Shown here in pieces: positions 1 through 12,159 of a stretch of DNA of 64,000 nucleotides. A program made the position numbers and the translations under genes. The stretch's first letter is position 1; each line of letters begins with the position of its first letter. The stretch lies in the sequence record OQ427096.1; one strand, 5' to 3'. The notes under the pieces are model-generated. The model was not told the origin of the DNA, made no database searches, and saw only the letters and a program-made list of their open reading frames with translations.

Positions 1-69
1 TAGTTCAATTGGCAGAACACCAGCCTCCAAAGCTGGGTGTTGAGGGTTCGAGTCCTTCACGGCGTGCCA
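1..69 (+). tRNA. tRNA-Trp(CCA), 5' end truncated by window edge
   Basis: Anticodon loop CT-CCA-AA, T-loop TTCGAGT, 3' GCCA. Confidence 0.9.
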
Positions 70-77
70 AGTTTTAT

Positions 78-153
78 GTCTGGGTAGCAAAACGGCAAAT
101 GCGCTGGCCTGCAAAGCCATGAGGTGCGAGTTCGATTCTCGCCTCAGACTCCA
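78..153 (+). tRNA. tRNA-Cys(GCA)
   Basis: Acceptor GTCTGGG/CTCAGAC, loop CT-GCA-AA, U73, CCA. Confidence 0.9.
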
Positions 154-163
154 AGTTTTATAT

Positions 164-241
164 CTGTGTGTAGCTCAGTCTGGTTAGAGTACTCGCTTTG
201 GAAGCGAGTGGTCGTTGGTTCGAATCCAACCACGCAGACCA
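164..241 (+). tRNA. tRNA-Pro(TGG)
   Basis: Full cloverleaf, CTCGC-TTTGGAA-GCGAG, CCA. Confidence 0.95.
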
Positions 242-249
242 AGTTTTAT

Positions 250-343
250 CCCGTTGTATCCCCAGACGCTACGAACGTCTACAAAGGTAACTGGAGTGGT
301 GTCAAAAGCACTGATGCAGGTTCGAATCCTGTCGACGGGTCCA
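250..343 (+). tRNA. Atypical D-armless tRNA-Arg(ACG)-like RNA with expanded variable region
   Basis: Acceptor CCCGTTG/CGACGGG+TCCA, anticodon arm AGACG-CTACGAA-CGTCT, T-arm GCAGG-TTCGAAT-CCTGT; no D-arm. Confidence 0.7.
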
Positions 344-348
344 AACAG

Positions 349-434
349 TTCTCGGACTTAAACCGAGTGGTGGAGGATAAACTGAGAAATCAGTGAATCC
401 CTTGACGAGATGGAGTCATTAACTCGATCGAGAA
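349..434 (+). ncRNA. Unidentified structured RNA
   Basis: Terminal TTCTCG/CGAGAA pairing; hairpins CTCGG/CCGAG, GGAT..CTGA-GAAA-TCAG..ATCC, TGAC/GTCA; lies between tRNAs. Confidence 0.45.
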
Positions 435-438
435 TTTT

Positions 439-513
439 GGGCTGCTCGTATAATGAGTATTACACCTGCCTTGCACGCAGGGAATCGGAGTTTGATTCTC
501 CGGCGGTCCACCA
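439..513 (+). tRNA. tRNA-Ala(TGC)
   Basis: G3.U70 pair, loop CT-TGC-AC, CCA. Confidence 0.93.
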
Positions 514-519
514 AAACTT

Positions 520-595
520 GGGGCCTTAGCTCAGATGGGAGAGCAGGTGCTTTGCAAGCATCAGGTCATCGGTTCGATCCCGATAGGCTCCACCA
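520..595 (+). tRNA. tRNA-Ala(TGC), second copy
   Basis: GGGGCCT/AGGCTCC, loop TT-TGC-AA, CCA. Confidence 0.95.
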
Positions 596-606
596 AGTTT
601 AGATAT

Positions 607-691
607 GCCCTGTTGGTGGAATTGGTAGACACGCATCCTTGAGGTGGATGTGCTGAAAGGCGTGAGGGTTCGAGTCCCTTGCAGGGTACCA
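607..691 (+). tRNA. tRNA-Leu(GAG)
   Basis: Loop TT-GAG-GT, long V arm, A73, CCA. Confidence 0.93.
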
Positions 692-705
692 AACAAGACT
701 GTTCA

Positions 706-838
706 ATCAGTCGAACGAGTTGGAAGGTCGGGTTCGAATCCCGAAGTGATGACGTCCGGATTAGGTCATCATTTGGTGTAGTGGGCAGCACGCCGATACA
801 TTAAAAGGTTGCGCAGAAGTGTGCTTCATTTAGACTGT
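706..838 (+). ncRNA. YrlA-like Y RNA (circularly permuted tRNA-like domain)
   Basis: GTCGAACG motif (710-717), T-arm TCGGG-TTCGAAT-CCCGA (728-744), loop-closed acceptor-like stem (745-753/765-773), D-arm GTGT-AGTGGGCA-GCAC (776-791), CAGTC/GACTG terminal helix. Confidence 0.7.
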
Positions 839-840
839 GA

Positions 841-1005
841 ACACAGTCAGGCAAGTCGATCAAAAGACGCGCCGACAAGCCCGAAGCGAGTTCTTCGGCT
901 AAGAAGGAAAGACATCGTTTCCTACTTGTAACGACAAGTCCTTAGAGGATGAAGTCTCCGTTAGTCGGACGCCTGAGAGTGGCGAAAAGGATTCTTCGGT
1001 ATTTC
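841..1005 (+). ncRNA. Unidentified multi-hairpin RNA
   Basis: Non-coding; hairpins AGGAAA/TTTCCT, ACTTGT/ACAAGT, GTC.CCG/CGGAC, GCC/GGC. Confidence 0.4.
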
Positions 1006-1079
1006 GGGTTGCAAGCATTAAGGTGATGCAGGAGGCTTTTAACCTTCAGAACAGGGATCGTTACCCTGGCGACCCACCA
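1006..1079 (+). tRNA. tRNA-Lys(TTT)
   Basis: Loop CT-TTT-AA, variant T-loop ATCGTTA, CCA. Confidence 0.88.
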
Positions 1080-1087
1080 AGTTTTAA

Positions 1088-1163
1088 GCCCCGTTGGCTC
1101 AATTGGCAGAGCAGCTGTTTTGTAATCAGCAGGTTGGGAGTTCGAGTCTCTCACGGGGCACCA
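1088..1163 (+). tRNA. tRNA-Thr(TGT)
   Basis: Cloverleaf, loop TT-TGT-AA, CCA. Confidence 0.93.
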
Positions 1164-1171
1164 AGTTTTAA

Positions 1172-1245
1172 GCGGGTATGGTATAGTGGTTGTGCCCTAG
1201 CCTTCCAAGCTAGAGAGACGAGTTCGATCCTCGTTACCCGCTCCA
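1172..1245 (+). tRNA. tRNA-Gly(TCC)
   Basis: GCGGGTA/TACCCGC, loop CT-TCC-AA, U73. Confidence 0.95.
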
Positions 1246-1256
1246 AGTTTTACGAT

Positions 1257-1334
1257 GCATCTGTCTGCTAATTGGAATAGGCAACGATCCTTTCAAGTTC
1301 GGGAATGCGGGTTCGAGTCCCGTCAGATGCTCCA
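1257..1334 (+). tRNA. tRNA-Glu(TTC), atypical (U73, T.T mismatch in anticodon stem)
   Basis: Loop CT-TTC-AA, GCATCTG/CAGATGC, CCA. Confidence 0.8.
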
Positions 1335-1340
1335 AGTTTT

Positions 1341-1415
1341 GCTCCACTCGTCTAGTGGCTAGGATGACACCCTTTCAAGGTGTAGAAGAGGGATCGAAAC
1401 CCTCGTGGAGTGCCA
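1341..1415 (+). tRNA. tRNA-Glu(TTC)
   Basis: ACACC-CTTTCAA-GGTGT, G73, CCA. Confidence 0.92.
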
Positions 1416-1421
1416 AATTAT

Positions 1422-1498
1422 GCGTCTGTAGCTCAACAGGATAGAGCATCCGGCTTCTACCCGGATGGCTGAGGGTTCGAGTCCTTCCAGGCGCGCCA
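1422..1498 (+). tRNA. tRNA-Arg(TCT)
   Basis: TCCGG-CTTCTAC-CCGGA, CCA. Confidence 0.95.
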
Positions 1499-1508
1499 AG
1501 TTTCAAAT

Positions 1509-1594
1509 GGATAGGTGGGCGAGTGGTTTATGCCAGCAGACTGTAAATCTGCCGCTTAATTGCATCGTTGGTTCGAATCCAACCCTATCCACCA
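1509..1594 (+). tRNA. tRNA-Tyr(GTA)
   Basis: GCAGA-CTGTAAA-TCTGC, long V arm, A73. Confidence 0.95.
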
Positions 1595-1601
1595 AGTTTA
1601 T

Positions 1602-1692
1602 GTGTCTGCTGTCGGGTTGGAGGACGGCACCGGGCTGTAACCCCGGATCCTCAAAAGGGACGTAGTAGGTTCGAATCCTACCAGGCACACCA
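1602..1692 (+). tRNA. tRNA-Tyr(GTA), divergent second copy
   Basis: CCGGG-CTGTAAC-CCCGG, long V arm, unusual D-arm, CCA. Confidence 0.85.
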
Positions 1693-1700
1693 AGTTATAT

Positions 1701-1776
1701 GGTTCCTTAGCTCAGTTGGTAGAGCAACGCTTTTACAAGGCGAAGGTCGTGGGTTCAAGTCCCTCAGGAACTACCA
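1701..1776 (+). tRNA. tRNA-Val(TAC)
   Basis: Loop TT-TAC-AA, cloverleaf, CCA. Confidence 0.9.
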
Positions 1777-1790
1777 AACGTTGAAACAGG

Positions 1791-1818
1791 TTGTGTAGAA
1801 AACAGCTTGGTATACAAT
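1791..1818 (+). promoter_or_regulatory. Putative sigma70-like promoter for the hammerhead/GOLLD unit
   Basis: TTGTGT-N16-TACAAT just upstream of the ribozyme. Confidence 0.4.
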
Positions 1819-1839
1819 AAGCAACATGAAGCAACGTCC

Positions 1840-1925
1840 AGACCACTGAAGAGTCGCCGGGACGATAAACAAAGGCACGAAACGTCGAGAGGCACAAAAC
1901 ATTAGCCTCGTGAGACGTCTGGTCT
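1840..1925 (+). ncRNA. Type I hammerhead ribozyme
   Basis: Stem I AGACCA/TGGTCT, core CTGAAGA (1846-1852), stem II GT(C)GCC/GGCAC, GAAA (1879-1882), stem III CGTC/GACG, GTC cleavage triplet (cut after 1919). Confidence 0.88.
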
Positions 1926-2760
1926 AGCAACTCAATTGTCGAAAGGCGATTGTTTAGGAATACGGTACAGTGATGTGCCTAATGGATTAAACGCCCACAA
2001 GCGGTCCGCCAGAGATGGTTCCTCTAGAACAAGTCGACATAGTGCAGCCGAAAGGTTGGCGTCTAGTATCCCTAGGCGATATGTGGAGGCTCAGTGAGAC
2101 ACGAGATTCAGGTCCAATGCCGAATGGTGAGGATTTGATCGTTTAGCGACGGTAGTGTTTCGGCTTAGCGGCAACTGACTCCAAGGACATTGAATCGGCA
2201 GGTACGTAGTTCAAGCCTTAGCGGGTAAGGGCGAGTATCAGGTCAGACGGACTAATGTTCGTACTGTATCACTCGGACGTAGGCTTAGCGGCTGAAACGA
2301 GAGGAGGTCGGGTAAGAAGCTGTCGCCCAAAAGGCTATGGACTTACGAACCTGCTCGACCTTAGTGGGCTTTCAACTTTGACGGTTAATCAAAACTACGA
2401 AAAACGCAAAGTCAGGTTCGGTCGTAAGTGAAAGTGGCTTAATCGTTGACACGAAAGTGAATCAACGCAATTTGAGGCTCGCAAGGCTGATGATTGTCTA
2501 TCAGGAAGTGCACCTAAGAGGAAGCCCCTCTGAATGGCTCGCAAGGTCAAGGGAAACGGGAAGGTAGAGTAGCTTACGATGACAGAGGAAACGCCACCTC
2601 TTTAAACTAGGCAGCCATGACGGTTAACAATGATGCATCGAAAGATGGTTGTTGTGGAAAAGTTGGGAAGGGCTCCGCAAGAGCTGATAATCCAAACGAA
2701 TGAATCGTCTCGTCAGACTGTATTCTCAGGTCGACACTTTGTTTCAAGGAGTTGTATTCC
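1920..2760 (+). ncRNA. Giant ornate RNA, GOLLD-like
   Basis: ~840 nt with no credible ORF inside a phage tRNA array; many GNRA-capped hairpins; end pairing CAACTC(1928-1933)/GAGTTG(2749-2754); motifs GAAACGAGAGGAG..CGGGTA, AACTACGAAAAA, CGCAAG, TGTATTCTCAG that I recall from GOLLD-type RNAs. Confidence 0.7.
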
Positions 2761-2800
2761 TCAAACGCTTCAATTGAAGTTTTTGCGAAATGCAATTTTT

Positions 2801-2878
2801 GGTCCCATAGTTTACGATTGGTTAGAACTCCCGCCTCTCAAGCGGAAGAATCGGGTTCGACTCCCGATGGGACTGCCA
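2801..2878 (+). tRNA. tRNA-Glu(CTC)
   Basis: Loop CT-CTC-AA, G73, CCA. Confidence 0.92.
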
Positions 2879-2886
2879 AGTTTTAT

Positions 2887-3090
2887 ACGCGTGTAGCTCA
2901 GTGGCGACGATAAGTTCAAAGACGGTAGGCATACTGTCACGCAGAGCGAGTCGAGGATTGGCGATACGACTGTGACGATACGAAGGTGGAGCTCGAGATC
3001 CTAGCTCCGACAATAACGGTACGGTCAACATTCGAGAGCGCCGGGTAGATAACCCGGAGGTCAGTGGTTCGATTCCATTTTCGCGTACCA
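2887..3090 (+). tRNA. tRNA-Ile(GAT)-like gene with ~130-nt structured insertion in the D-loop
   Basis: D-stem GCTC(2896-2899)/GAGC(3036-3039) separated by insert 2905-3034; CCGGG-TAGATAA-CCCGG; T-arm; ACCA. Confidence 0.75.
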
Positions 3091-3118
3091 TATAAGTAGA
3101 GTAGTACAAAAGTTTTAT

Positions 3119-3195
3119 CCGGGTTTAGCTCAGTCTGGCAGAGCACGCCGTTTGGGGCGGTGAGGTCGTAGGTTCGAACCCTGCAACCCGGACCA
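3119..3195 (+). tRNA. tRNA-Pro(TGG)
   Basis: CGCCG-TTTGGGG-CGGTG, CCA. Confidence 0.95.
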
Positions 3196-3209
3196 ATTAG
3201 AGAAGTGTT

Positions 3210-3449
3210 ATGGAAACTTTAGAAACGAAAGTGACACGTCTAGGCAATGGGCTTTATGGATGCAGGATCATCAGGTCAGCTGACAAGAAGCCAATTGTTG
3301 AATTAAGAGTTGAAAAGTCTCAGATTAGGAATGCTATGTTTGATATGCTCCGAACTCTAGACAAGCTGGGATATGATAGTCCTATGGCACATGCTTCGCG
3401 ACATCGCGGTAAGGCTTGTGTCACAGACTCGAAATATATCTGGCATTGA
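3210..3449 (+). CDS. hypothetical protein
   Basis: 79-aa ORF filling the gap between two tRNAs. Confidence 0.7.
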   Translation: METLETKVTRLGNGLYGCRIIRSADKKPIVELRVEKSQIRNAMFDMLRTLDKLGYDSPMAHASRHRGKACVTDSKYIWH

Positions 3450-3454
3450 TTTAT

Positions 3455-3540
3455 TCTGGACGCGCCTAATGGGGAGGCACCGGGCTGTTAACCCGGCGAT
3501 AGAAATATCCGACACGGTTCGATTCCGTGGTCCAGAGCCA
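3455..3540 (+). tRNA. tRNA-Asn(GTT) with long variable arm
   Basis: CCGGG-CTGTTAA-CCCGG, V-arm GATA-GAAA-TATC, G73, CCA. Confidence 0.8.
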
Positions 3541-3546
3541 AGATAT

Positions 3547-3622
3547 GGATTACAGGCCAACTGGTGTAGGCATGCAGCTGTTAACTGCAGATTGTTGAGT
3601 TCGATTCTCAAGTAGTCCTCCA
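3547..3622 (+). tRNA. tRNA-Asn(GTT), U73
   Basis: TGCAG-CTGTTAA-CTGCA, CCA. Confidence 0.85.
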
Positions 3623-3630
3623 AAACAAAC

Positions 3631-3705
3631 GGTCTATTAGTCTATGGGTTAAGATGCTGGCCTGTCACGCCGGCGTAACGAGTTCGAGCCTCGTATAGAC
3701 CGCCA
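3631..3705 (+). tRNA. tRNA-Asp(GTC)
   Basis: CTGGC-CTGTCAC-GCCGG, G73, CCA. Confidence 0.93.
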
Positions 3706-3712
3706 AACAAAT

Positions 3713-3792
3713 CGGGATAGGGACTGCTAGGTGTGGTCGCCGGACTGTCAATCCGGAGAGTCAGACGGATTCGAATTCCGTTATCCCGACCA
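3713..3792 (+). tRNA. tRNA-Asp(GTC), divergent second copy (A73)
   Basis: CCGGA-CTGTCAA-TCCGG, CGGGATA/TATCCCG, CCA. Confidence 0.82.
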
Positions 3793-3799
3793 AGTCAGT

Positions 3800-3872
3800 G
3801 GCGTCCTCTTCGGAGATAGTGAAGTGAGGTAAAGTACTCAATGCTCACGGAACGAATAATCAGACGCCTCCA
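3800..3872 (+). ncRNA. CCA-terminated non-tRNA hairpin RNA
   Basis: GGCGTC/GACGCC stem then TCCA; internal UUCG hairpin and GTGAG/CTCAC stem. Confidence 0.55.
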
Positions 3873-3885
3873 AAATTGAGAATGA

Positions 3886-3959
3886 TGCGCGGTCGTATAA
3901 CGGCAGTATACTGGGCTCATAACCCGGAGATGGAGGTTCGATTCCTCCCTGCGCTACCA
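3886..3959 (+). tRNA. initiator tRNA-fMet(CAT)
   Basis: 1:72 mismatch, three G-C pairs in anticodon stem, loop CT-CAT-AA. Confidence 0.9.
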
Positions 3960-3984
3960 AATGGTCAGGCTCATGACCTAACTC

Positions 3985-4042
3985 TGTGAGTATGATAAGC
4001 TTTCATGAGGCTGTCGGGACTTAACTGTTCAACTCACAACCA
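3985..4042 (+). ncRNA. CCA-terminated mini RNA
   Basis: 7-bp TGTGAGT/ACTCACA then ACCA; 58 nt. Confidence 0.5.
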
Positions 4043-4048
4043 ATCAAC

Positions 4049-4124
4049 GGGTCCGAAGCTCAAATGGCAGAGCAACTGGTTCTTACCCAGTAGGAAGTCG
4101 GTTCGATCCCGACCGGACCCACCA
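4049..4124 (+). tRNA. tRNA-Lys(CTT)
   Basis: ACTGG-TTCTTAC-CCAGT, CCA. Confidence 0.9.
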
Positions 4125-4130
4125 AACTAT

Positions 4131-4170
4131 GCGCTCGAGCAGCCGAAAGGAAGTAGCCGAGGGCGCACCA
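4131..4170 (+). ncRNA. CCA-terminated minihelix RNA
   Basis: GCGCTC/GGGCGC stem then ACCA, internal CC-GAAA-GG; 40 nt. Confidence 0.5.
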
Positions 4171-4176
4171 AACAAT

Positions 4177-4265
4177 GGACTCGTTCCCGTAGTTGGTCGA
4201 ACGGAGCGGACTCTTAATCCGACGGCGAAAGCCCATCGCAGGTTCGAATCCTGCCGGGTCCACCA
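4177..4265 (+). tRNA. tRNA with CTT (Lys) anticodon on a type II body
   Basis: CGGA-CTCTTAA-TCCG, V-arm GGC-GAAA-GCC, A73, CCA. Confidence 0.8.
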
Positions 4266-4278
4266 AAATGAGATAGAT

Positions 4279-4557
4279 ATGCCGAAGTACAATTTCAAGT
4301 GTAGCGAATGTGAGCACCGCGGTGATGTCTGGACCGGCGATACTGAAAAGGTCGACGTGGACTACAAAGACGTAGAGTGCCCTGGTTGTGGAAAAAAGAC
4401 CTACAACTATGCTCCTTGGGATTCAGGTGCTACATCTCAGTCATGGGGCCATGTGAAGCCTACAACGCTAGGAAGGCAGAAGGCTCCTCAGGATTTTAGA
4501 AACTTCCTGACACAGATTAAGAAGGCACATCCAGGTTCAACAATCCGCGATCATTGA
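4279..4557 (+). CDS. FmdB-like zinc-ribbon protein
   Basis: MPKYNFKCSECEH...CPGCG, two CxxC motifs. Confidence 0.75.
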   Translation: MPKYNFKCSECEHRGDVWTGDTEKVDVDYKDVECPGCGKKTYNYAPWDSGATSQSWGHVKPTTLGRQKAPQDFRNFLTQIKKAHPGSTIRDH

Positions 4558-4573
4558 TCAAAAAGGTGTTGCG

Positions 4574-4783
4574 ATGTACGTGTATCAAACTTATTATGAC
4601 TACACCGAAACATATTGTCATCCGAATCCTGAGCAATGGTCGGAAGAAAGGAAAGTTCTGTGTACTACTCTAGACGAGAGCTTGGCGCAAGAAGTTGCAG
4701 CCAAGCACAACGCTGAGAGCAAGGCACACAGGTGGTATAAAGAATATGCGAGAGTTGAGAAGTTTGAATTGACCTCGCGATAA
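4574..4783 (+). CDS. hypothetical protein
   Basis: ORF with AAGGTG ribosome-binding site. Confidence 0.7.
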   Translation: MYVYQTYYDYTETYCHPNPEQWSEERKVLCTTLDESLAQEVAAKHNAESKAHRWYKEYARVEKFELTSR

Positions 4784-4791
4784 AGAATCGC

Positions 4792-4865
4792 TGTTCAGTA
4801 GCTCAGTTGGTAGAGCGGCTGCCATTTAGGGCGGCAGGTCGTGGGTTCGAGACCCACTTGGACGT
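4792..4865 (+). pseudogene. tRNA-like gene with aberrant anticodon loop and no encoded CCA
   Basis: Canonical D-arm TAGCTCAGTTGGTAGAGC and T-arm; GCTGCC-ATTTAG-GGCGGC gives a 6-nt (or 8-nt) loop. Confidence 0.65.
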
Positions 4866-4944
4866 TAAGCGCTAGGGCGAATTTAAAGTACTCACATACT
4901 AGTCCGAGACAGTATCGCCCGGATCCTATAATTGTCAGCAGGTA

Positions 4945-5424
4945 ATGGTCATGCAGAAGAAAATTGACGTGAAAGCAGTCGAGGCGTTCATGCAGACGCA
5001 GAGCCCTGAGACAAAAGTTTATCTTGGAGCAGACTCCGAGAAGGTAAAAATCAATGGTAAGATGTACGCGGATTACACCGTCGTCATCGTTGTTCACATT
5101 GATGGTTGTAAGGGTTGTAAGGTATTCGCCGAGACAACTCGTGAGGAAGACTACGATAAGGACCCTTCAAAGCCGTTCACTCGGATGATGAAGGAAGCTG
5201 AAAAGGTAGCCGAGCTTCACGATCGTTTCAAGGACACCTTCTACGACTTCGAGGTTAGTATTCACCTCGACATCAACCCGAAGAAGACGGCAGGTTCAAG
5301 TATCGCAATGGAAGCGGCACGTGGTTACGTCAAGGCGATGACCATGGTTGATCCTCACTTGAAGCCTGTAGCATTTGCTGGTTCTTATGCTGCGGATCGC
5401 GCTAAAGAACTTGGTATGTGCTAA
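4945..5424 (+). CDS. RNase H-like YkuK (DUF458) family protein
   Basis: VYLGADS, IHLDIN..GSS, KP.AFAGSYAAD motifs. Confidence 0.8.
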   Translation: MVMQKKIDVKAVEAFMQTQSPETKVYLGADSEKVKINGKMYADYTVVIVVHIDGCKGCKVFAETTREEDYDKDPSKPFTRMMKEAEKVAELHDRFKDTFYDFEVSIHLDINPKKTAGSSIAMEAARGYVKAMTMVDPHLKPVAFAGSYAADRAKELGMC

Positions 5425-5431
5425 GAGATAT

Positions 5432-5517
5432 GCCCCTGTAGGCGAATTGGTATAGCTACTGGCCTTAGAAGCCAGCGCCGAAAGGCATTGACGGTTCGAG
5501 TCCGTCCAGGGGTACCA
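5432..5517 (+). tRNA. tRNA-Leu(TAG)
   Basis: CTGGC-CTTAGAA-GCCAG, long V arm. Confidence 0.95.
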
Positions 5518-5524
5518 AATATGT

Positions 5525-5600
5525 GTCGGAGTAGCTCAGTTGGTAGAGCGGTAGCTTGAAAAGTTACGCGTCGCAGGTTCGATTCCTGTCTCCGATACCA
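5525..5600 (+). tRNA. tRNA-Phe(GAA)
   Basis: GTAGC-TTGAAAA-GTTAC, CCA. Confidence 0.93.
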
Positions 5601-5663
5601 AAACACCGTCACTCAGGTCCCTCGGTGCAAAATAAGGGAATACTCAGGAGAGGAGATTGTAGT

Positions 5664-5849
5664 ATGAAGTTGCCTTCGCGTTTTCAAATCGGTGATAAGG
5701 TTCTCGCTGGTCGTCTTGATGGTGGGAGCAAAGGTGAAGTAATTGGTGTACACTTCAACCGATACAAAGTATCGTATGATGTGGTCGACGAGTTGACCCA
5801 ACGTACAAAGAAGCACCTCAGTGAACGGGTTCATCCTGTCACAGAGTAA
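5664..5849 (+). CDS. hypothetical protein (SH3/KOW-like pattern)
   Basis: AGGAG RBS; FQIGDKV..KGEVIGV. Confidence 0.65.
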   Translation: MKLPSRFQIGDKVLAGRLDGGSKGEVIGVHFNRYKVSYDVVDELTQRTKKHLSERVHPVTE

Positions 5850-5869
5850 ATACAGATATAAGACAATTT

Positions 5870-5944
5870 GCATCGTTAGCTGAGATGGATTAGCGCTTGC
5901 CTGAAGAGCTCGAGAGGTTGGTTCGATACCAACACGATGCACCA
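5870..5944 (+). tRNA. tRNA-Phe(GAA), weak anticodon stem
   Basis: Loop CT-GAA-GA, only ~2-3 stem pairs, acceptor GCATCGT/ACGATGC. Confidence 0.75.
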
Positions 5945-5959
5945 AACAAAGGAACGTGA

Positions 5960-6208
5960 ATGAGCTTTAAGCCGGTTAATACTTTCGTCATCGTAAAGCG
6001 TAGGGAAGAAGATACAACGAGTCAGGGAGGCATCATCATCTCTGGATCAGTTGATCATAACCTCTTCACTGTTGTGGCCAAGAATGATCTTGTGACATTC
6101 GTTGAGCCCGGTGATACGGTAGTAATCAACATTCGCGAAGCAGCTGAAATCGACGATGTACATTACGCAGTTGATGCAAAGCACATCTTCACCAAGGTTT
6201 CTAAGTAA
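5960..6208 (+). CDS. GroES-like co-chaperonin
   Basis: FKPVNTFVIVKRREEDTTSQGGIII..V.PGDTV, GroES mobile-loop pattern. Confidence 0.8.
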   Translation: MSFKPVNTFVIVKRREEDTTSQGGIIISGSVDHNLFTVVAKNDLVTFVEPGDTVVINIREAAEIDDVHYAVDAKHIFTKVSK

Positions 6209-6217
6209 GACAGTTTT

Positions 6218-6294
6218 GCCCAGGTGACGGAATTGGTATACGTACTGTCCTCAGAAGGCAGGTTTTGAGGGTTCGAGTCCCTCTCTGGGTACCA
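6218..6294 (+). tRNA. tRNA-Leu(CAG) with short variable loop
   Basis: CTGTC-CTCAGAA-GGCAG, V loop GTTTT, A73. Confidence 0.88.
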
Positions 6295-6304
6295 AAGTTT
6301 CAGT

Positions 6305-6382
6305 GTTCCACGTGTCGGAATTGGTAGACGAGCCAGACTGTGAATCTGGAGTTTGCGGGTTCGAGCCCCGTCGTGGTCCCCA
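6305..6382 (+). tRNA. tRNA-His(GTG)
   Basis: CCAGA-CTGTGAA-TCTGG, G-1:C73, two mismatches at top of acceptor stem. Confidence 0.85.
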
Positions 6383-6428
6383 AAGTTGATCAGGTGATTC
6401 GCCACCTTAGAGTGCGAAATTGAAATAT

Positions 6429-6503
6429 TGCCTGTTAGCTCAGTGGTAGAGCAATCGCCCGATAAGCGATAGGTCGTCAGTTCGATCCTGACACGGGCAA
6501 CCA
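6429..6503 (+). tRNA. tRNA-Ile(GAT), C33
   Basis: ATCGC-CCGATAA-GCGAT, CCA. Confidence 0.9.
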
Positions 6504-6507
6504 ATAA

Positions 6508-6581
6508 GCCTTCATAGCTCAAAGGTAGAGCACTCGCCCGATAAGCGATAGACCTAGGATCGTTACCTAGTGAAGGCACCA
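6508..6581 (+). tRNA. tRNA-Ile(GAT), C33, second copy
   Basis: TCGC-CCGATAA-GCGA, T-loop ATCGTTA. Confidence 0.88.
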
Positions 6582-6586
6582 AACCG

Positions 6587-6615
6587 TTGACGAAACAGCG
6601 TAAGGGCGCTAAAGT
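6587..6615 (+). promoter_or_regulatory. sigma70-like promoter
   Basis: TTGACG-N17-TAAAGT. Confidence 0.6.
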
Positions 6616-6619
6616 AGTA

Positions 6620-6775
6620 CGCAACAAGGTATTCTAGTTGGAGCCTTGCAAAGAGCCGGACTGTTAAAGGTTGCGGCGAGACTAGATTGGTAGCTTAATT
6701 AGCTTACGGTGCATCATATGTTGCTAGGGTATGATGACTCAGAAGCCTTCGGGAACCCTTAACTTAGCTACAAAT
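6620..6775 (+). ncRNA. Unidentified structured RNA(s)
   Basis: Non-coding downstream of promoter; stems TCTAGT/ACTAGA and TAGCT/AGCTA, CC-TTCG-GG hairpin. Confidence 0.4.
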
Positions 6776-6780
6776 TCTAT

Positions 6781-6858
6781 AGCCCAGTCGTTTAGTTGGT
6801 CCAAGACGCCGTCCTTTGAAGTCGGTCATCGTAGGTTCGAATCCTACCTGGGTTGCCA
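6781..6858 (+). tRNA. tRNA-Gln(TTG)
   Basis: Loop CT-TTG-AA, G73, CCA. Confidence 0.9.
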
Positions 6859-6865
6859 AGTTTGA

Positions 6866-6939
6866 TGCCTCTTAGTTCAATGGTAGAATGTCGCTCTCTG
6901 AAAGCGAAGACAACGGATCGATACCGTTAGAGGCTGCCA
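6866..6939 (+). tRNA. tRNA-Gln(CTG)
   Basis: TCGCT-CTCTGAA-AGCGA, G73, CCA. Confidence 0.9.
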
Positions 6940-6944
6940 AATAT

Positions 6945-7065
6945 GGGACTGTGCCGGATAGCTCCCGGACATTATGATGTGAGTAGGTTAGCCTGACTAG
7001 GGTGTTTGGTGCATCAGGCACCATCTGAAAGACTAATCCAAAGTTGATTGATGCAGGTCCCGCCA
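6945..7065 (+). ncRNA. CCA-terminated multi-hairpin RNA
   Basis: GGGACT/GGTCCC stem then GCCA; internal hairpins CCGG/CCGG, GGTGC/GCACC, TAATC/GATTG. Confidence 0.45.
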
Positions 7066-7252
7066 GATGCAAAAGTAAGACTAGCCGTTCAAGTCGGTAA
7101 GCACATGGTGTGCACCATGCCGCGTTAGGTGTGGAGGAGGCGTTCGAATCGTCGGTGGTTGCCAGGCCCCTATAGACACTGCTTGCAAGAGGGATTTAAA
7201 GTAACCAAATGAGGTCGCTCCTCGCGGAACAGTTCCCTCGGTACTATTCTAT

Positions 7253-7364
7253 GAAGGTTGTAGCTCAAAGGTAGAGCGCCGGGTGTCGGACCCGGGTCAA
7301 AGAGTATGAAGTTCGCGCGAACTGTCTGCTCAGGTGCAGGAGTCGAAGCCTGCCAGCCTTCCCA
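7253..7364 (+). tRNA. Atypical tRNA-like gene (TCG in anticodon position) with ~40-nt variable arm
   Basis: 8-bp GAAGGTTG/CAGCCTTC then CCA; canonical D-arm; CCGGG-TGTCGGA-CCCGG; V-arm with AGTTC-GCGC-GAACT; 8-nt T-loop. Confidence 0.65.
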
Positions 7365-7384
7365 CTAATTGATAATTAGAGACG

Positions 7385-7669
7385 ATGAGACAGTTTAACC
7401 TTCGAGGTAAGAAGACATATCGTCCTGGCTGTGGTTGTTGCGTTGTTGAAAACTTCAAGCCAGAAATCATTGACAAGATTCACGCATACGAAATGCGTAA
7501 TCCAGATGAATTCGCTCTCACAGCAGACGATTTCGATTGTGTAGAAGATTTTCTCATTTATATTGATGTTCCCGTTGACCAAGTTTGTTATGATAGTTCA
7601 CACTGCGCTCCCTTCGAAGGCAAGGAAGAAAGCCAAGAAGAAGGTTGTACCGACAAGGACGCCAGTTAA
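7385..7669 (+). CDS. hypothetical protein
   Basis: ORF after tRNA; CGCC motif. Confidence 0.55.
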   Translation: MRQFNLRGKKTYRPGCGCCVVENFKPEIIDKIHAYEMRNPDEFALTADDFDCVEDFLIYIDVPVDQVCYDSSHCAPFEGKEESQEEGCTDKDAS

Positions 7670-7913
7670 GAAGTTCGTTGAAAAGAAACGACAGTTCATT
7701 CCCAAGATCCCCGTTTACCGTGCAGCAGGAACCGAGCACATCCGATCCCATGGATTGGAGAAGGTGCCGCCTAAACTGGAACGTCCAATCGTGTATCATG
7801 GTGATATGGCTGAACGTGAAGCGGCTGCTCAAGATCAAATTGAGTACCGCGAGCATTTGGTTAGAAACGCTTTCCGTAACGGGAAGGTATCGGCATGCTA
7901 CATTTCAGGATGA
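7590..7913 (+). CDS. hypothetical basic protein
   Basis: Lys-rich N-terminus; abuts next gene. Confidence 0.6.
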   Translation: MIVHTALPSKARKKAKKKVVPTRTPVKKFVEKKRQFIPKIPVYRAAGTEHIRSHGLEKVPPKLERPIVYHGDMAEREAAAQDQIEYREHLVRNAFRNGKVSACYISG

Positions 7914-7916
7914 CCT

Positions 7917-8147
7917 ATGAATACTGTGATTGAAAAGACTGACAAGGGTGTGATCAAAGGCGCGGTGTTCATCGTCGCCGGCGATAGGCATTGGGTTGAG
8001 GGTAATGTCTACGGCAACCCCAACTTCAAGGATGGCACCTATATCCACACGTCCAAGATTGTTGCAGTTCGTGGACGCCGCATTGAAACCCTGAACTCGT
8101 TCTACACTTGCGAGTTCCACGTTGATGGACCTGTTCGCCTATGGTAA
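7917..8147 (+). CDS. hypothetical protein
   Basis: Tightly packed ORF; GTYIHTSKIV motif typical of small phage proteins. Confidence 0.7.
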   Translation: MNTVIEKTDKGVIKGAVFIVAGDRHWVEGNVYGNPNFKDGTYIHTSKIVAVRGRRIETLNSFYTCEFHVDGPVRLW

Positions 8148-8461
8148 CCCAAGTTCGTATTCTGATTGATGAGTGTGGTGCACCTCTGGATTCCATTGTT
8201 GAAGTGACCGAAATCTTGGATGATGGTCACATCATGTATACCTGGGAAGACATCACCTTCATGGCTTCACCGGAAGCCTGGGCATTGCATTATCCGGATT
8301 CTGCATATGGATATGATTCTCAGAGCGCTGGCACAGACATCAACTACGAGATTTTGAGAAACGCCGCTGAGCAATTCTTGGTGTTTGTTGAGGAAGAAAA
8401 ACTCGACGAAGCTGCCATTGATTACTTCTACGACGTGTTCAAGGAAACTCTCGGTAAGTAG
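8141..8461 (+). CDS. hypothetical protein
   Basis: Overlapping co-oriented ORF. Confidence 0.7.
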   Translation: MVTQVRILIDECGAPLDSIVEVTEILDDGHIMYTWEDITFMASPEAWALHYPDSAYGYDSQSAGTDINYEILRNAAEQFLVFVEEEKLDEAAIDYFYDVFKETLGK

Positions 8462-8574
8462 AAATATTGGAGCGTAACTCAGCCAGGTGGCTGACGCTGT
8501 TTGCTAAACAGTTGGGACCCTATGAACGGGTCTGGGGATCGAGACCTCTGCGCTCCGCCAATTTGGATTTGATC

Positions 8575-9093
8575 ATGAAAATCGTGCTGCTTGATCTTGA
8601 GCAAACTGTGATCGACGACTGGGAGCACATGAACCTGCTTCCAGGAAACCTCGATAAGATTCGCTGGGCAATTCAGCACACTGGCTGTAAGCTGGGATTG
8701 ATGTCCTGGGCTGTATGGAATGAGGTGGACAAAGAGACGTTCAAGAAGCGCCTGCAAGGTCCACTCGAAGAAGTGCTTGGTATGAAGTTCTCCGAAGATC
8801 TTATCTTCTCCATGCACGACTTCTCAGACATAATTCTTAAGCGACGTCGGAAATGGCTTAGCCGTGATGATATGTTCGACCTGTTTGGCAAGGAAGAGTG
8901 TCTACTCCAGCTGCTGAGGCTTGAACACTTCGGAAAGAATGCTCGCGTTACTCTGATTGATGACGTGGTTGATCACAACATGGAATTCACCAAAGGCGCT
9001 TCCAAGGTGCGTTTCATCAACGTGACCAATCCTCAGTACAAGCATTGGAATATCAATGAAACTGTCCATGACTATGGCAGTTGGAGAGAATGA
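8575..9093 (+). CDS. HAD-like hydrolase (variant)
   Basis: MKIVLLDLEQTVID (motif I-like) and TLIDD (motif IV-like). Confidence 0.55.
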   Translation: MKIVLLDLEQTVIDDWEHMNLLPGNLDKIRWAIQHTGCKLGLMSWAVWNEVDKETFKKRLQGPLEEVLGMKFSEDLIFSMHDFSDIILKRRRKWLSRDDMFDLFGKEECLLQLLRLEHFGKNARVTLIDDVVDHNMEFTKGASKVRFINVTNPQYKHWNINETVHDYGSWRE

Positions 9094-9452
9094 TGGAAGA
9101 ACTTGCTCCTCAGAAAGGCAATATGCCTGACAGCTTCATCCTCGTTCGTACATCTGCAGGCGTTCATGTGCTTGGTGGTTGGAGCGGTGGCTATCTCTAC
9201 GGCGATAGCTGGCGTCTCAGCACTGCATTGAAGCGCGTAGTTGAGTACGATGGTGATTGGGTAGTTGTTGAAACAAGATCAGGTTCGACCTATGCCCTAC
9301 CGACACAAGCAGCCATTCGCCGTTATACTTTGACTGTGACGACTTCGGGCGTGTTTAACTCGTTCGACCGTCAGGCAAAGGAACAAGGAATCCTCTTTGA
9401 AGCGATTCCGGAATCCGAATTCAACGATGTAATCAACCAACTGGAAAATTGA
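9090..9452 (+). CDS. conserved phage hypothetical protein
   Basis: VLGGWSGGYLYGDSWR motif. Confidence 0.75.
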   Translation: MMEELAPQKGNMPDSFILVRTSAGVHVLGGWSGGYLYGDSWRLSTALKRVVEYDGDWVVVETRSGSTYALPTQAAIRRYTLTVTTSGVFNSFDRQAKEQGILFEAIPESEFNDVINQLEN

Positions 9453-9679
9453 TCATGAGCAATGCTAAGCTGCAACGTCTGGAAGAAGAGCTGTATGAAA
9501 AGCTGCGCGAGATTCAGGATGTCGCTGTAGAGACGAACACCCCGTTCTCTTTCTCCATCAACTACCATACCTATGATGTGTTCCTCCCGGATCATGAAGA
9601 TGAAGACATGGTAGAATATCTCAAGGAAGAAGTTGGTGTTGAAGTTGGTGATTGGGTCAGCTCTAGCGATCGTTGCTAA
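9449..9679 (+). CDS. hypothetical protein
   Basis: Ends in W.SSS..C, a motif common in small phage proteins. Confidence 0.7.
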   Translation: MIMSNAKLQRLEEELYEKLREIQDVAVETNTPFSFSINYHTYDVFLPDHEDEDMVEYLKEEVGVEVGDWVSSSDRC

Positions 9680-10155
9680 TGAGAATTGACACTGACCTCT
9701 ATGAGTTGGTGGAAGGTAGACCAGACGCAGCTTCCATGCTCGTCTGGGCTGCATCACTGCTCGGGCTAAACGACGTTCCTGAGTCCGAGGAAGTTGAAGC
9801 TGCAATTGGTATCTTTGAGGATGCTCGAGAGCAGATCATCGAGAAACGTGCTAAGGATCGTTTGACCGATATCGTTCGCTACATTGTCCCTCCTCAGTAC
9901 GATAAAAAATGGGACAAGCGCACGTCGAAGCATCCTGACATTCCTCGTAATTGGTGGAATGGAGCATTCGTAAAATCGTTTGGCTGGACCAAAGATAGCT
10001 TCATTGTTGAAGTTAGTTCCTACGTCGGCAACAACGAGTATGATGGGACAACGATTGAGATTCCTCAACATCTCGCTGACGTAAAGAACTTCAATTGGAA
10101 CCTGCAAGATAAGATTCCTCTTATTGACGCATTCCTAAAAGCAGCCAACCGCTAA
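9673..10155 (+). CDS. hypothetical protein
   Basis: Co-oriented overlapping ORF. Confidence 0.7.
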   Translation: MLMRIDTDLYELVEGRPDAASMLVWAASLLGLNDVPESEEVEAAIGIFEDAREQIIEKRAKDRLTDIVRYIVPPQYDKKWDKRTSKHPDIPRNWWNGAFVKSFGWTKDSFIVEVSSYVGNNEYDGTTIEIPQHLADVKNFNWNLQDKIPLIDAFLKAANR

Positions 10156-10166
10156 ATATCACGTAA

Positions 10167-10255
10167 GGATTGTTAACCAACCGGGGAGTTGGCACCGCTT
10201 CGAAAGCGGTAGGTGCCCGAAAGGGCATGGGGATCGAGACCTCAGCAATCCGCCA
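10167..10255 (+). tRNA. tRNA-Ser(CGA)
   Basis: ACCGC-TTCGAAA-GCGGT, long V arm, G73. Confidence 0.9.
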
Positions 10256-10261
10256 AACAAT

Positions 10262-10348
10262 GGACAGTAAACTAGCCGGGGAGCTAGCGCCGACTTGAAA
10301 TCGGTAGGCACGTAATGGTGTGGGGATCGAAACCTCTGCTGTCCGCCA
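10262..10348 (+). tRNA. tRNA-Ser(TGA)
   Basis: GCCGA-CTTGAAA-TCGGT, long V arm, G73. Confidence 0.9.
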
Positions 10349-10362
10349 AACAAGGAAAGATT

Positions 10363-10767
10363 ATGAGTCGTAGTGGACCGATTGAAGCTGTAGAGTACAG
10401 AGGTGTCAAGCCTGGTGATCGCTGCATTGTGATGACCACGTCTACTGGACGTTCGAAGATGCACGCTGGAACCTACCTTGGTCAACGCAAGGGAAATTGT
10501 GTCGTCGAGCTTGATTATATCAAGACCATCTTTGTGAATGCCGAAGGCAAGCATTACGATTGGAATGCTGAGTATAAGCAAAATCCATATCCGAGAGCTC
10601 GTTGGAATACTCCTGAGTATCATGCGGAACAGGAACGCTACAATTTGAAGAAGAAAGAGCTTCAAGCTGGCTATGAGTACAAGAAGGTCCCGTCTACTCG
10701 CCGCTCGACTCTTCAGAACAACAATGTCTATCCTGCGGATATGGCACTGAAAGATTTCAAGCTGTAA
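10363..10767 (+). CDS. hypothetical protein
   Basis: AAGGA RBS; fills gap between tRNAs. Confidence 0.75.
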   Translation: MSRSGPIEAVEYRGVKPGDRCIVMTTSTGRSKMHAGTYLGQRKGNCVVELDYIKTIFVNAEGKHYDWNAEYKQNPYPRARWNTPEYHAEQERYNLKKKELQAGYEYKKVPSTRRSTLQNNNVYPADMALKDFKL

Positions 10768-10778
10768 ATAGAACATAT

Positions 10779-10865
10779 GGACAGTAATCTGGCTTGGTAG
10801 TCAGCACCGCTTGGAAAGCGGTTGGTACCGAAAGGTATGGGATTCGATTTCTCTGCTGTCCGCCA
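10779..10865 (+). tRNA. tRNA-Ser(GGA)
   Basis: ACCGC-TTGGAAA-GCGGT, long V arm, G73. Confidence 0.9.
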
Positions 10866-10878
10866 AATAAGGCGAACG

Positions 10879-11073
10879 ATGATTTACGTTGTATTTGATG
10901 ATACGTATCGCGGTGCACACAAACCATTTCATTCAATTGAGGCAACTCAAGAGGATGCAGATAGGGTAGTGCATGATTTGAGAGAAACAAGCACATCAAC
11001 ATGTGCAAGAACACTGATCAAATGGAAGGCATTTGAGTTTGGTCAGACGTTTGAACTACCTAAGCCCTTATAG
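10879..11073 (+). CDS. hypothetical protein
   Basis: ORF between tRNAs; 3' end overlaps tRNA-Thr. Confidence 0.6.
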   Translation: MIYVVFDDTYRGAHKPFHSIEATQEDADRVVHDLRETSTSTCARTLIKWKAFEFGQTFELPKPL

Positions 11074-11138
11074 CACAGTGGCAGTGCACCTCATTGGTAA
11101 TGAGGAGGTCGTCGGTTCGATCCCGACTAAGGGCACCA
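11064..11138 (+). tRNA. tRNA-Thr(GGT)
   Basis: CCTCA-TTGGTAA-TGAGG, CCA. Confidence 0.95.
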
Positions 11139-11202
11139 AATAAAGGAAATGGATATGACTGATACGACAAGCTTCACCGCTGTTGGCGAAGGTTAAAAAT
11201 CT

Positions 11203-11279
11203 GCGGGTATAATTCAGTCTGGTAGAATGCTTGCTTGCCATGCAAGTCGTCGCGAGTTCGAATCTCGCTACCCGCTCCA
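11203..11279 (+). tRNA. tRNA-Gly(GCC)
   Basis: CTTGC-TTGCCAT-GCAAG, U73, CCA. Confidence 0.95.
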
Positions 11280-11289
11280 GATGTCAAAA

Positions 11290-11318
11290 GCCAGGGCTTT
11301 AATCGGTCCTGGCTTTTT
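11290..11318 (+). terminator. Intrinsic terminator closing the tRNA array
   Basis: GCCAGGGC/GTCCTGGC hairpin + TTTTT. Confidence 0.8.
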
Positions 11319-11358
11319 CTTTGGTTGAATAGAAACAGTCTACCTATAGGATAAAGCA

Positions 11359-11835
11359 ATGAACAGACACGACGTGAAAGACCAGCTCGAAGACCTGTGG
11401 TTCGATGTGCGCCATTGGTTCAAGAACCTCCGCCTGGAAATCGACACTCGAATCAACCCACGTCAGAAGTGGTTGACGAAAGAAATCGGTCGCCGTTTCG
11501 TCGACAAAGACTACATCATCGAGACGACCATCTTCGAAAGCATGATCCACTTCTGGGAAGAGGACGATGGAGAAAGGTCGACCCGCTACCAGTTCGAGCA
11601 CTACGAAGGACCGTGCGGTGGTAAGGCGCTCAAGCCCGAAGACCAAGAAGCCTACGTATACCTACGTAAGCTGTACGCTGACCTGGACAAGTGCTACCGT
11701 TGGGCTAAGACGCGTAAGGGCTTCTGGGCAGACTGCTACACCAACTACAAGCCGGAAAACGAGAAAAAACTCGAAGCCGAAGACACGTACTATATGAACG
11801 AAATCATCCGTCTCCGTAAGCACATGTGGACCTAA
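11359..11835 (+). CDS. hypothetical protein
   Basis: AGGA RBS, long ORF. Confidence 0.75.
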   Translation: MNRHDVKDQLEDLWFDVRHWFKNLRLEIDTRINPRQKWLTKEIGRRFVDKDYIIETTIFESMIHFWEEDDGERSTRYQFEHYEGPCGGKALKPEDQEAYVYLRKLYADLDKCYRWAKTRKGFWADCYTNYKPENEKKLEAEDTYYMNEIIRLRKHMWT

Positions 11836-12159
11836 ATGTACGGAATCCCTGAAAACTACCGGCGGGTGGCAGAATCTTTCTATCGCCCGCATGGTTGCAC
11901 CTTAGATTTTTCTCAAAAGGCATTGCTGCAAGCTTTCGAGAAAGAAACCTACGGCGTTGACCACGACATGTCGAAGAACGGCTGGGCTTTTGGCAAGAAA
12001 GCCTTCGACATCACTGTCGCAAGTTGGCGCGAAGATCTTGCAGAAGGTCTTTTCTGCAAGTATGACTACCTCCGAGACTATGAAGAAGATTCGTTCGAGT
12101 ATGATTTCATCTGGAACGTGATCAAGAATTTTTCTTCGGCAAGGCTGTTCACTTACTGA
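11836..12159 (+). CDS. hypothetical protein
   Basis: Abuts previous gene. Confidence 0.7.
   Translation: MYGIPENYRRVAESFYRPHGCTLDFSQKALLQAFEKETYGVDHDMSKNGWAFGKKAFDITVASWREDLAEGLFCKYDYLRDYEEDSFEYDFIWNVIKNFSSARLFTY

Follow-up and report, generated by a model that had tools for sequence, protein, structure and literature searches.

In Xanthomonas phage X1, the right-hand 64 kb of the genome (OQ427096.1, positions 136059-200058; this whole stretch is called the window, and its own numbering is used below) contain a ribozyme of a self-cleaving class next to a giant non-coding RNA. Between the transfer RNA (tRNA) genes tRNA-Val (1701-1776) and tRNA-Glu (2801-2878), where GenBank does not annotate anything, a promoter-like element is followed by a type I hammerhead ribozyme and by a GOLLD RNA. 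These three elements probably constitute one cassette, in which the promoter-proximal ribozyme would discard a leader of roughly 90 nt from the transcript and provide GOLLD with a fixed 5'-hydroxyl (5'-OH) end. A first-pass annotation of the DNA had already proposed that the ribozyme matures the 5' end of the giant RNA, and this proposal is now backed by the fixed register of ribozyme and GOLLD in seven lineages, by covariation within the ribozyme, and by the promoters adjoining the ribozymes of the phages RAS14 and XacN1. Because the same promoter-ribozyme-GOLLD layout is found in distant relatives, cutting at the 5' end of the giant RNA is the most likely function of the ribozyme.

Including its pseudoknot strand, the hammerhead extends from 1835 to 1925 and is complete, with a canonical core, three stems and a GUC cleavage triplet. 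Its parts are:

1835-1839 with 1860-1864, plus strand: pseudoknot, in which the 5' strand CGUCC pairs with GGACG of loop II and clamps stems I and II together by a tertiary contact, based on covariation
1840-1845 with 1920-1925, plus strand: stem I, AGACCA with UGGUCU, based on sequence, descriptor scan and fold
1846-1852, plus strand: catalytic core C3 U4 G5 A6 A7 G8 A9 (CUGAAGA); N7 is the sole variable position in nine sequences
1853-1858 with 1874-1878, plus strand: stem II, G1853 U1854 G1856 C1857 C1858 with G1874 G1875 C1876 A1877 C1878, C1855 being bulged, based on sequence and fold
1859-1873, plus strand: loop II, which includes the 3' strand of the pseudoknot (1860-1864)
1879-1882, plus strand: core G12 A13 A14 A15.1 (GAAA), invariant in all nine sequences
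1883-1917, plus strand: stem III, CGUC (1883-1886) with GACG (1914-1917), based on sequence and fold
1889-1893 with 1905-1909, plus strand: distal hairpin of stem III, GAGGC with GCCUC
1918-1919, plus strand: U16.1 and C17; self-cleavage is predicted between C1919 and U1920, the triplet being G1917 U1918 C1919

The stems comprise six, five and four base pairs (bp), A1882 and U1918 provide the A15.1-U16.1 pair, and C1919 is H17. Re-reading of the sequence, a descriptor scan and the minimum-energy fold all reproduce the parse of the first-pass annotation exactly, and the fold of 1840-1925 alone is exactly the three-way junction of a hammerhead. The pseudoknot, which is built from the bases just 5' of stem I and the start of loop II, had been overlooked and was found here. 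The descriptor was our own (CUGANGA, GAAA, UH and three stems, allowing all three topologies). On both strands of the window (128 kb) it matches only at 1840-1925. Dinucleotide shuffles (n = 150) contain on average 0.26 relaxed matches per window and in no case an equally good one, and an equally good match appeared in one of 600 block shuffles. Over about 1.9 Mb of unrelated loci the descriptor gave roughly ten scattered matches. At gathering threshold, Rfam does not report any ribozyme family in the whole window or in 16 GOLLD-bearing loci. With a 111-nucleotide (nt) stretch as input, the full-length Hammerhead_1 model (RF00163) can be aligned to 1840-1925 without a change of register, but reaches only 13.1 bits against a threshold of 34 because of insertions of 22 and 31 nt in loops II and III. 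Similarly, the hammerhead of the metagenome contig L231 is recognised below threshold, and in very short stretches only, by RF00008 (19.4 versus 48.5 bits) and RF03152 (14 versus 56.3 bits). Judged from its sequence the hammerhead is genuine and conserved, and it is predicted to cleave itself.

Downstream of the predicted cut the GOLLD RNA and its tail extend up to the next tRNA gene:

1920-2302, plus strand: GOLLD 5' domain (383 nt), based on a profile from the relatives
~1933-1952, plus strand: P1 hairpin with a GAAA loop, inside the 5' domain
2303-2732, plus strand: conserved GOLLD 3' domain (Rfam RF02032, 179.2 bits against a gathering score of 150, E = 1e-48)
2733-2800, plus strand: 3' tail up to tRNA-Glu at 2801, with two small hairpins (2767-2784 and 2783-2800) and five U after each, based on sequence

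The RNA, previously called GOLLD-like, is thus a true GOLLD of about 840 nt, and open reading frames of more than 88 residues do not overlap 1777-2800, in line with the ORF-free RNA that had been claimed. It also has the location near phage tRNAs that is known for GOLLD, with 36 tRNA genes on both sides of it within window positions 1-12000. The structurally characterised env-38 GOLLD is 833 nt long, consists of residues 1-420 and 421-833, and forms a 14-mer nanocage as determined by cryo-electron microscopy, which is known only for env-38 (PMC12286853). RF02032 covers only the universally conserved 3' domain, and by comparison with env-38 the less conserved 5' domain must be located upstream of 2303. 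The profile of this domain matches from the first base after the predicted cut in all family members, including the contig L168 that had been excluded from building the profile. The first six nucleotides of GOLLD (UGGUCU, 1920-1925) are at the same time the 3' strand of stem I.

Some further observations concern the GOLLD RNA itself. Its first 12 nt (1920-1931, UGGU-N-U-R-R-CAAC) are conserved well beyond the needs of stem I, the UGGU being invariant, and could take on another function in the mature RNA once the ribozyme has been cut off. Within GOLLD another pairing partner of the freed 5' UGGUCU was looked for, but a consistent site did not turn up. The 5' domain of X1 has four spaced copies of (C/U)UUAGCG(G/A) at 2142-2149, 2164-2171, 2217-2224 and 2284-2291. 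The same motif is present in RAS14 downstream of the 3' domain (CUUAGCGG, L228 ~3578-3587), and the copies possibly represent a repeated structural module. In L231 (2680-2753, minus strand), L233 (649-722, minus strand) and L168 (10562-10628, plus strand), but not in X1, the variable linker of the 3' domain encloses a tRNA gene; tRNAs in the GOLLD linker have been mentioned before (PMC12286853). Concerning the 3' end, the hairpins at 2767-2784 and 2783-2800 were not called by a terminator scan, and the loop of the 3'-tail hairpin differs among X1, the phage BUDD, and L231. The 3' end probably results from weak termination or from an RNase P cut at 2800/2801, separately from the 5' end.

Homologous hammerheads are found at the same place in seven lineages, which cover X1 and BUDD, two metagenome contigs similar to X1, XacN1, an XacN1-like contig, the Stenotrophomonas phages RAS14 and CM1, and two environmental contigs. 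BUDD is 98% identical to X1 with a single change in loop III within the three stems and loops, and is therefore uninformative. The other relatives were reached stepwise. A weak nhmmer match led to XacN1, and BLAST with the XacN1 locus led to RAS14 and CM1. In X1, XacN1, RAS14 and CM1 alike, the predicted cut is followed at a distance of exactly 45 nt by the motif GUAYAGUGAURUGC. Further members were collected with the pattern TGGTNTNNCAAC-N29-37-GTANAGTGATNTGC, which includes the 3' strand of stem I but not the catalytic core. It matched one IMG/VR contig (L168) and five metagenome contigs (L230, L231, L232, L233 and L234), and did not match in bacterial genomes. L232 does not contain a GOLLD and was rejected as a chance match. 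Every true match, like XacN1, RAS14 and CM1, bears a type I hammerhead that ends exactly at the TGGT with which GOLLD starts. A GOLLD 3' domain is present downstream in each relative (171-232 bits), ended by the contig edge in L168, and the distance from the cut to the 3' domain is 381-403 nt in all eight complete loci. Of the other patterns tried, GGAATANNGTACAGTGATGTGC did not match in IMG/VR, and GTACAGTGATGTGC alone was discarded since it retrieved about 109 mostly random loci.

Upstream of the cassette, at a distance of a few hundred bases, XacN1 (L002 1511-1930) and L230 (783-1168) have a permuted (two-piece) transfer-messenger RNA (tmRNA), recognised by the Rfam model tmRNA_permuted with 123 and 97 bits, respectively. 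It is unannotated in the XacN1 record, and neither GOLLD nor tmRNA nor ribozymes are mentioned in the paper on XacN1. At the corresponding place RAS14 has an unannotated stretch resembling a T-arm.

The ribozyme is further supported by the pattern of its substitutions, with covariation in all three stems and in the pseudoknot. Because MAFFT misaligned the variable loops, nine ribozymes were parsed by hand, each parse was checked letter by letter against the genomes, and only the paired and core columns were aligned. In this alignment 96.1% of the cells are paired and 15 of 20 pairs have changed on both sides. Sliding the partners by one to three columns lowers the pairing to 27-41%. None of 500 shuffles reached the observed value on four of five measures; on the remaining one, the count of further pair types, 27 of 500 did. 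Double changes affect five of five pairs in the pseudoknot, five of five in stem II, and four of five in stem III. The pseudoknot covaries in six of the seven lineages, with CGUCC/GGACG in X1 and L231, CGGU/ACCG in XacN1 and L230, and AUCGG/CCGAU in RAS14 and L234; L168 does not have it. Stem II is found as GU-GCC/GGCAC, GUUCA/UGAAC, GGCCC/GGGCC and GCCCA/UGGGC, and stem III as CGUC/GACG, CAG/CUG, CAUUC/GAAUG and ACCGU/ACGGU, while the position 1.5-2.5 of stem I is C-G, U-A or A-U. The distal hairpin of stem III varies, being absent in L231, which has a GUGA loop instead, and longer in XacN1 and RAS14. The cleavage triplet is GUC in X1, XacN1, L230 and RAS14, and GUA in L231, L233, L168 and L234, so that H17 is either C or A. 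About 40% of the natural hammerheads are stabilised by pseudoknots between stems I and II, which they require to cleave fast at low or physiological Mg2+ (PMC3088659).

The region in front of the ribozyme contains the following element in X1:

1785-1835, plus strand: promoter-like element with the -35 sequence TTGTGT (1791-1796), a 16-nt spacer and the -10 sequence TACAAT (1813-1818), based on sequence

This element is kept in the X1-like metagenome contigs L231 and L233. RAS14 has a perfect TTGACA-16-TATAAT (12 of 12 positions) that ends at L228 2538, leaving a gap of 7 nt to the pseudoknot strand, which starts at 2546. The promoter of XacN1 is TTGACA-16-TAATAT (10 of 12) with an upstream TG; it ends at 2422 and the pseudoknot strand starts at 2435, so that the gaps of the two phages range from 7 to 13 nt. 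Because these sigma-70 promoters abut the ribozyme, the ribozyme would be placed at the very start of the primary transcript, and would thus remove solely itself and the 5'-triphosphate leader. A second copy of the 51-nt element, 84% identical, is located just upstream of the window (L001 6108-6158, OQ427096.1 ~135945-135995); the first tRNA of the X1 array follows after about 60 nt. This second copy suggests that one promoter type may drive both the tRNA array and GOLLD. Further copies of the 17-nt core of the element were not found in the window when up to three mismatches were allowed.

Based on these elements the following course can be proposed. Transcription would start near 1825, about 10 nt upstream of 1835. 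The leader, which comprises the first ~95 nt, would fold into the type I hammerhead, with the pseudoknot 1835-1839/1860-1864 setting stems I and II side by side. As soon as the 3' strand of stem I (1920-1925) has been transcribed, the RNA would cleave itself after C1919. Because almost the whole type I ribozyme is located upstream of its cut, only five to six nucleotides would stay on the product. The leader of ~95 nt, carrying a 5'-triphosphate and a 2',3'-cyclic phosphate, would be discarded together with nearly the whole ribozyme. GOLLD would be left with a 5'-OH at U1920, independently of the start site used and of any read-through from the upstream tRNA array. The 5'-OH on GOLLD and the 2',3'-cyclic phosphate on the leader are expected from the established chemistry of hammerheads. 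We infer catalysis in vivo, the start site, the chemistry of the ends and a need of GOLLD for a defined end. Candidate reasons for such a need are a precise terminus for folding or cage assembly, or protection from 5'-end-dependent decay. It is improbable that the ribozyme-made end is obligatory for GOLLD, with a precise 5'-OH being needed for the 5' domains to close the nanocage cap, or with polynucleotide kinase (Pnk) and RNA ligase giving a circular or ligated GOLLD.

Several points weigh against the cassette as proposed. Checking with covariance models had been suggested in the first-pass annotation, and while the GOLLD model scores above its threshold, the gathering score is not reached with any hammerhead model (RF00163, RF00008, RF02276, RF03152 and others); on 1 kb of X1 the hammerhead models did not even match at E <= 10. 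In the X1 ribozyme, stem II contains a bulged C and stem III an insertion of 23 nt, and some relatives depart from the consensus near the core, RAS14 and XacN1 by one or two additional U following A9, and L168 and L234 by a U.U at 10.1/11.1. Any of these features could slow catalysis. The covariation was counted on a hand-made alignment of paired columns, which leans towards the structure, although the raw sequences display the same compensatory changes. The promoter put forward for X1 in the first-pass annotation is present as an element and conserved in L231 and L233, but it is weak by consensus, matching at 8 of 12 positions and falling below the cut-off of the sigma-70 scan. Subfamily members without a ribozyme could have been missed, as the retrieval pattern contained the 3' strand of stem I. 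Finally, the locus L129 (842-1240, minus strand, on the 238-kb IMG/VR contig 3300045988_170940) has a related 5' domain, with the motif GAAUAGCGUACAGUGAUGUGCGUAAAGG in common with XacN1, but does not have a hammerhead. The start of its 5' domain differs, and two tRNAs end about 140 nt upstream of the GAAUAGCGUACAGUGAUGUGCGUAAAGG motif.

The co-occurrence of hammerhead and GOLLD, which the first-pass annotation had suggested to check, holds for seven lineages of one subfamily, and not for GOLLD in general. Using the relaxed descriptor, we did not find a hammerhead within 2 kb upstream of any of 14 other IMG/VR GOLLD loci. These 14 were taken from a scan with a generic pattern of the GOLLD 3' domain, of whose 115 matches about 14 were true and the rest mostly random. 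As far as can be read from the sequences, the hammerhead is limited to a single GOLLD subfamily, which is found in jumbo phages of Xanthomonas and Stenotrophomonas and in environmental relatives. In several of the other GOLLDs (L063, L022) a tRNA is located about 420-490 nt before the 3' domain and thus directly before the 5' domain. This suggests that tRNA processing and ribozyme are interchangeable for setting the 5' end, and our hypothesis is that tRNAs and ribozymes are alternative makers of the GOLLD 5' end.

The ribozyme could also be real but mainly serve insulation or dosage control, either uncoupling GOLLD from tRNA or tmRNA read-through or setting its half-life through the 5'-OH. The upstream distance to the end of tRNA-Val is only 63 nt in X1, XacN1 and L230 have a permuted tmRNA in front of the cassette, and read-through transcripts would all be cut at the same site. 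However, in RAS14 and XacN1 a strong promoter is placed directly on the ribozyme, and thus the cassette would work without upstream transcripts, and the cut is in fixed register with the 5' domain in all lineages. Insulation as the main job is accordingly unlikely, although it overlaps with the release of a defined GOLLD end and does not exclude it.

A further explanation, which had also been raised by the first-pass annotation, is that the 5'-OH is made for healing and sealing. Pnk would phosphorylate the end, after which GOLLD would be closed into a circle or attached to a different RNA by an RNA ligase. The enzymes are indeed encoded in the window:

24344-25231, plus strand: T4-type polynucleotide kinase/3'-phosphatase (Pnk; PF25109 5e-42, AAA_33), annotated as polynucleotide kinase; context only
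39760-40926, plus strand: RNA ligase (PF09414 and an OB-fold domain); context only
54225-55340, plus strand: Rnl1-type RNA ligase (PF09511 6e-28), annotated as RNA ligase; context only

It is established that the ends produced by hammerheads are substrates of such enzymes. However, Pnk homologues are present in 2935 phage records, are typical of tRNA repair, and are thus not particular to the hammerhead-GOLLD arrangement. Each locus has one ribozyme and does not have a 3' ribozyme. The ends of the giant RNA had been proposed to pair, and CAACUC (1928-1933) is indeed complementary to GAGUUG (2749-2754), but this is at chance level, as 42% of the shuffles contain a complement of at least six. 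This closing helix was rejected. It does not covary, it is unchanged in the few relatives that have it, and it does not have a counterpart in XacN1, L230, RAS14 and L234. A second complement (1957-1963 with 2754-2760) crosses the first one and is broken in L231. In addition, linear GOLLD produced in vitro already forms the 14-mer cage (PMC12286853). Because the helix is at chance level, Pnk is widespread and a 3' ribozyme is missing, circularisation is speculation, and we consider a healing and sealing function very unlikely. Equally unlikely is a chance match or an inactive relic without present function, for which the sub-threshold Rfam scores and the inactive hammerhead-like RNAs of Perreault et al., one of them from a Xanthomonas phage (PMC3088659), can be quoted, given that over seven lineages the core positions are invariant while stems and pseudoknot change by compensation, that the position relative to GOLLD and promoter is fixed, and that shuffles almost never contain an equally good match.

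Compared to the type I hammerheads with a pseudoknot between stems I and II (RF00163, PMC3088659), the X1 ribozyme has the same CUGANGA and GAAA, A15.1-U16.1 pair, H17 and open stem I, the same pseudoknot of 4-6 bp connecting the flank of stem I to loop II, and the same predicted products. It differs by its long loop II and stem III insertions, through which it remains below the Rfam threshold, and some of its relatives differ by the extra U after A9 or the U.U at 10.1/11.1. The context is also different. The known hammerheads of this type are found in repeats, in viroid-like circles and in pairs flanking prophage genes, whereas the X1 type is single-copy, promoter-proximal and fused in fixed register to a giant non-coding RNA. 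The GOLLD of X1 resembles that of env-38 (RF02032) in combining a variable 5' domain of ~383 nt with a 3' domain of ~430 nt in a phage tRNA island. Its 5' domain, which has GUACAGUGAUGUGC at 45 nt from the start, represents a separate subfamily that has its own promoter and ribozyme. In contrast to the X1 subfamily, env-38 and several IMG/VR GOLLDs are located directly downstream of a tRNA (PMC12286853).

Small self-cleaving ribozymes are also used as built-in, protein-free processing signals for adjoining RNAs in other systems. Transcripts of the retrotransposons R2 and L1Tc have ribozymes similar to that of the hepatitis delta virus (HDV) at their 5' end. Like these, and like the theta ribozymes that adjoin phage tRNAs (PMC10879173), the X1 hammerhead would process the RNA next to it. 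However, the cut made by HDV-like ribozymes is at their own 5' edge, and they remain part of the downstream RNA, whereas the X1 hammerhead is predicted to cut near its own 3' edge and to be discarded. Engineered cassettes of hammerhead, guide RNA and HDV ribozyme release exact RNA ends. The X1 arrangement has the same order of promoter, type I hammerhead whose stem I 3' strand represents the first bases of the cargo, and cargo, but it is natural, conserved and stabilised by a pseudoknot, and does not have a 3' ribozyme.

The tRNA array around GOLLD contains further peculiarities. At 2886-3101 a tRNA-like gene is apparently interrupted in its D-loop region by ~135 inserted nucleotides. The 5' part consists of the acceptor 5' strand and GCUCAGUGG (~2888-2904), and the 3' part (~3037-3098) of the D-stem 3' strand, anticodon arm, T arm and CCA. 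Neither ARAGORN nor Rfam called it at threshold, with Rfam giving a partial tRNA match of 21.2 bits; it could be an intron-containing or disrupted tRNA. Among the tRNAs of X1 there are also several pairs of a normal and an oversized one (Tyr 86/91 nt, Asn 76/86, Asp 75/80, Lys 76/89), and one tRNA, annotated as tRNA-OTHER, with an abnormal anticodon loop; the loci concerned are 1602-1692, 3455-3540, 3713-3792, 4177-4265 and 4792-4865. These are possibly insertions, introns or decoys.

To our knowledge, most bacterial and phage hammerheads do not have an assigned biological role, and we know of neither a function nor a maturation pathway for GOLLD. Literature linking GOLLD with hammerheads was not found, in a search that did not extend to the original GOLLD paper and to a thesis quoted on the expression of GOLLD. 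The X1 ribozyme adds a new member to a known class, and its use as promoter-proximal 5'-end maker for a giant cage-forming RNA would be a new variation within known ribozyme biology. The conserved promoter-hammerhead-GOLLD cassette would give the hammerhead a concrete role, the protein-free definition of a 5' end, and it predicts the exact 5' nucleotide of the mature GOLLD (U1920) together with the end chemistry. A point mutation in the ribozyme core of a culturable Xanthomonas campestris phage would provide a genetic handle on the GOLLD ends and their meaning for accumulation, cage formation and phage yield. If the ribozyme-made end were obligatory after all, a ribozyme, an RNA repair pathway and an RNA-only compartment would be tied into one pathway.

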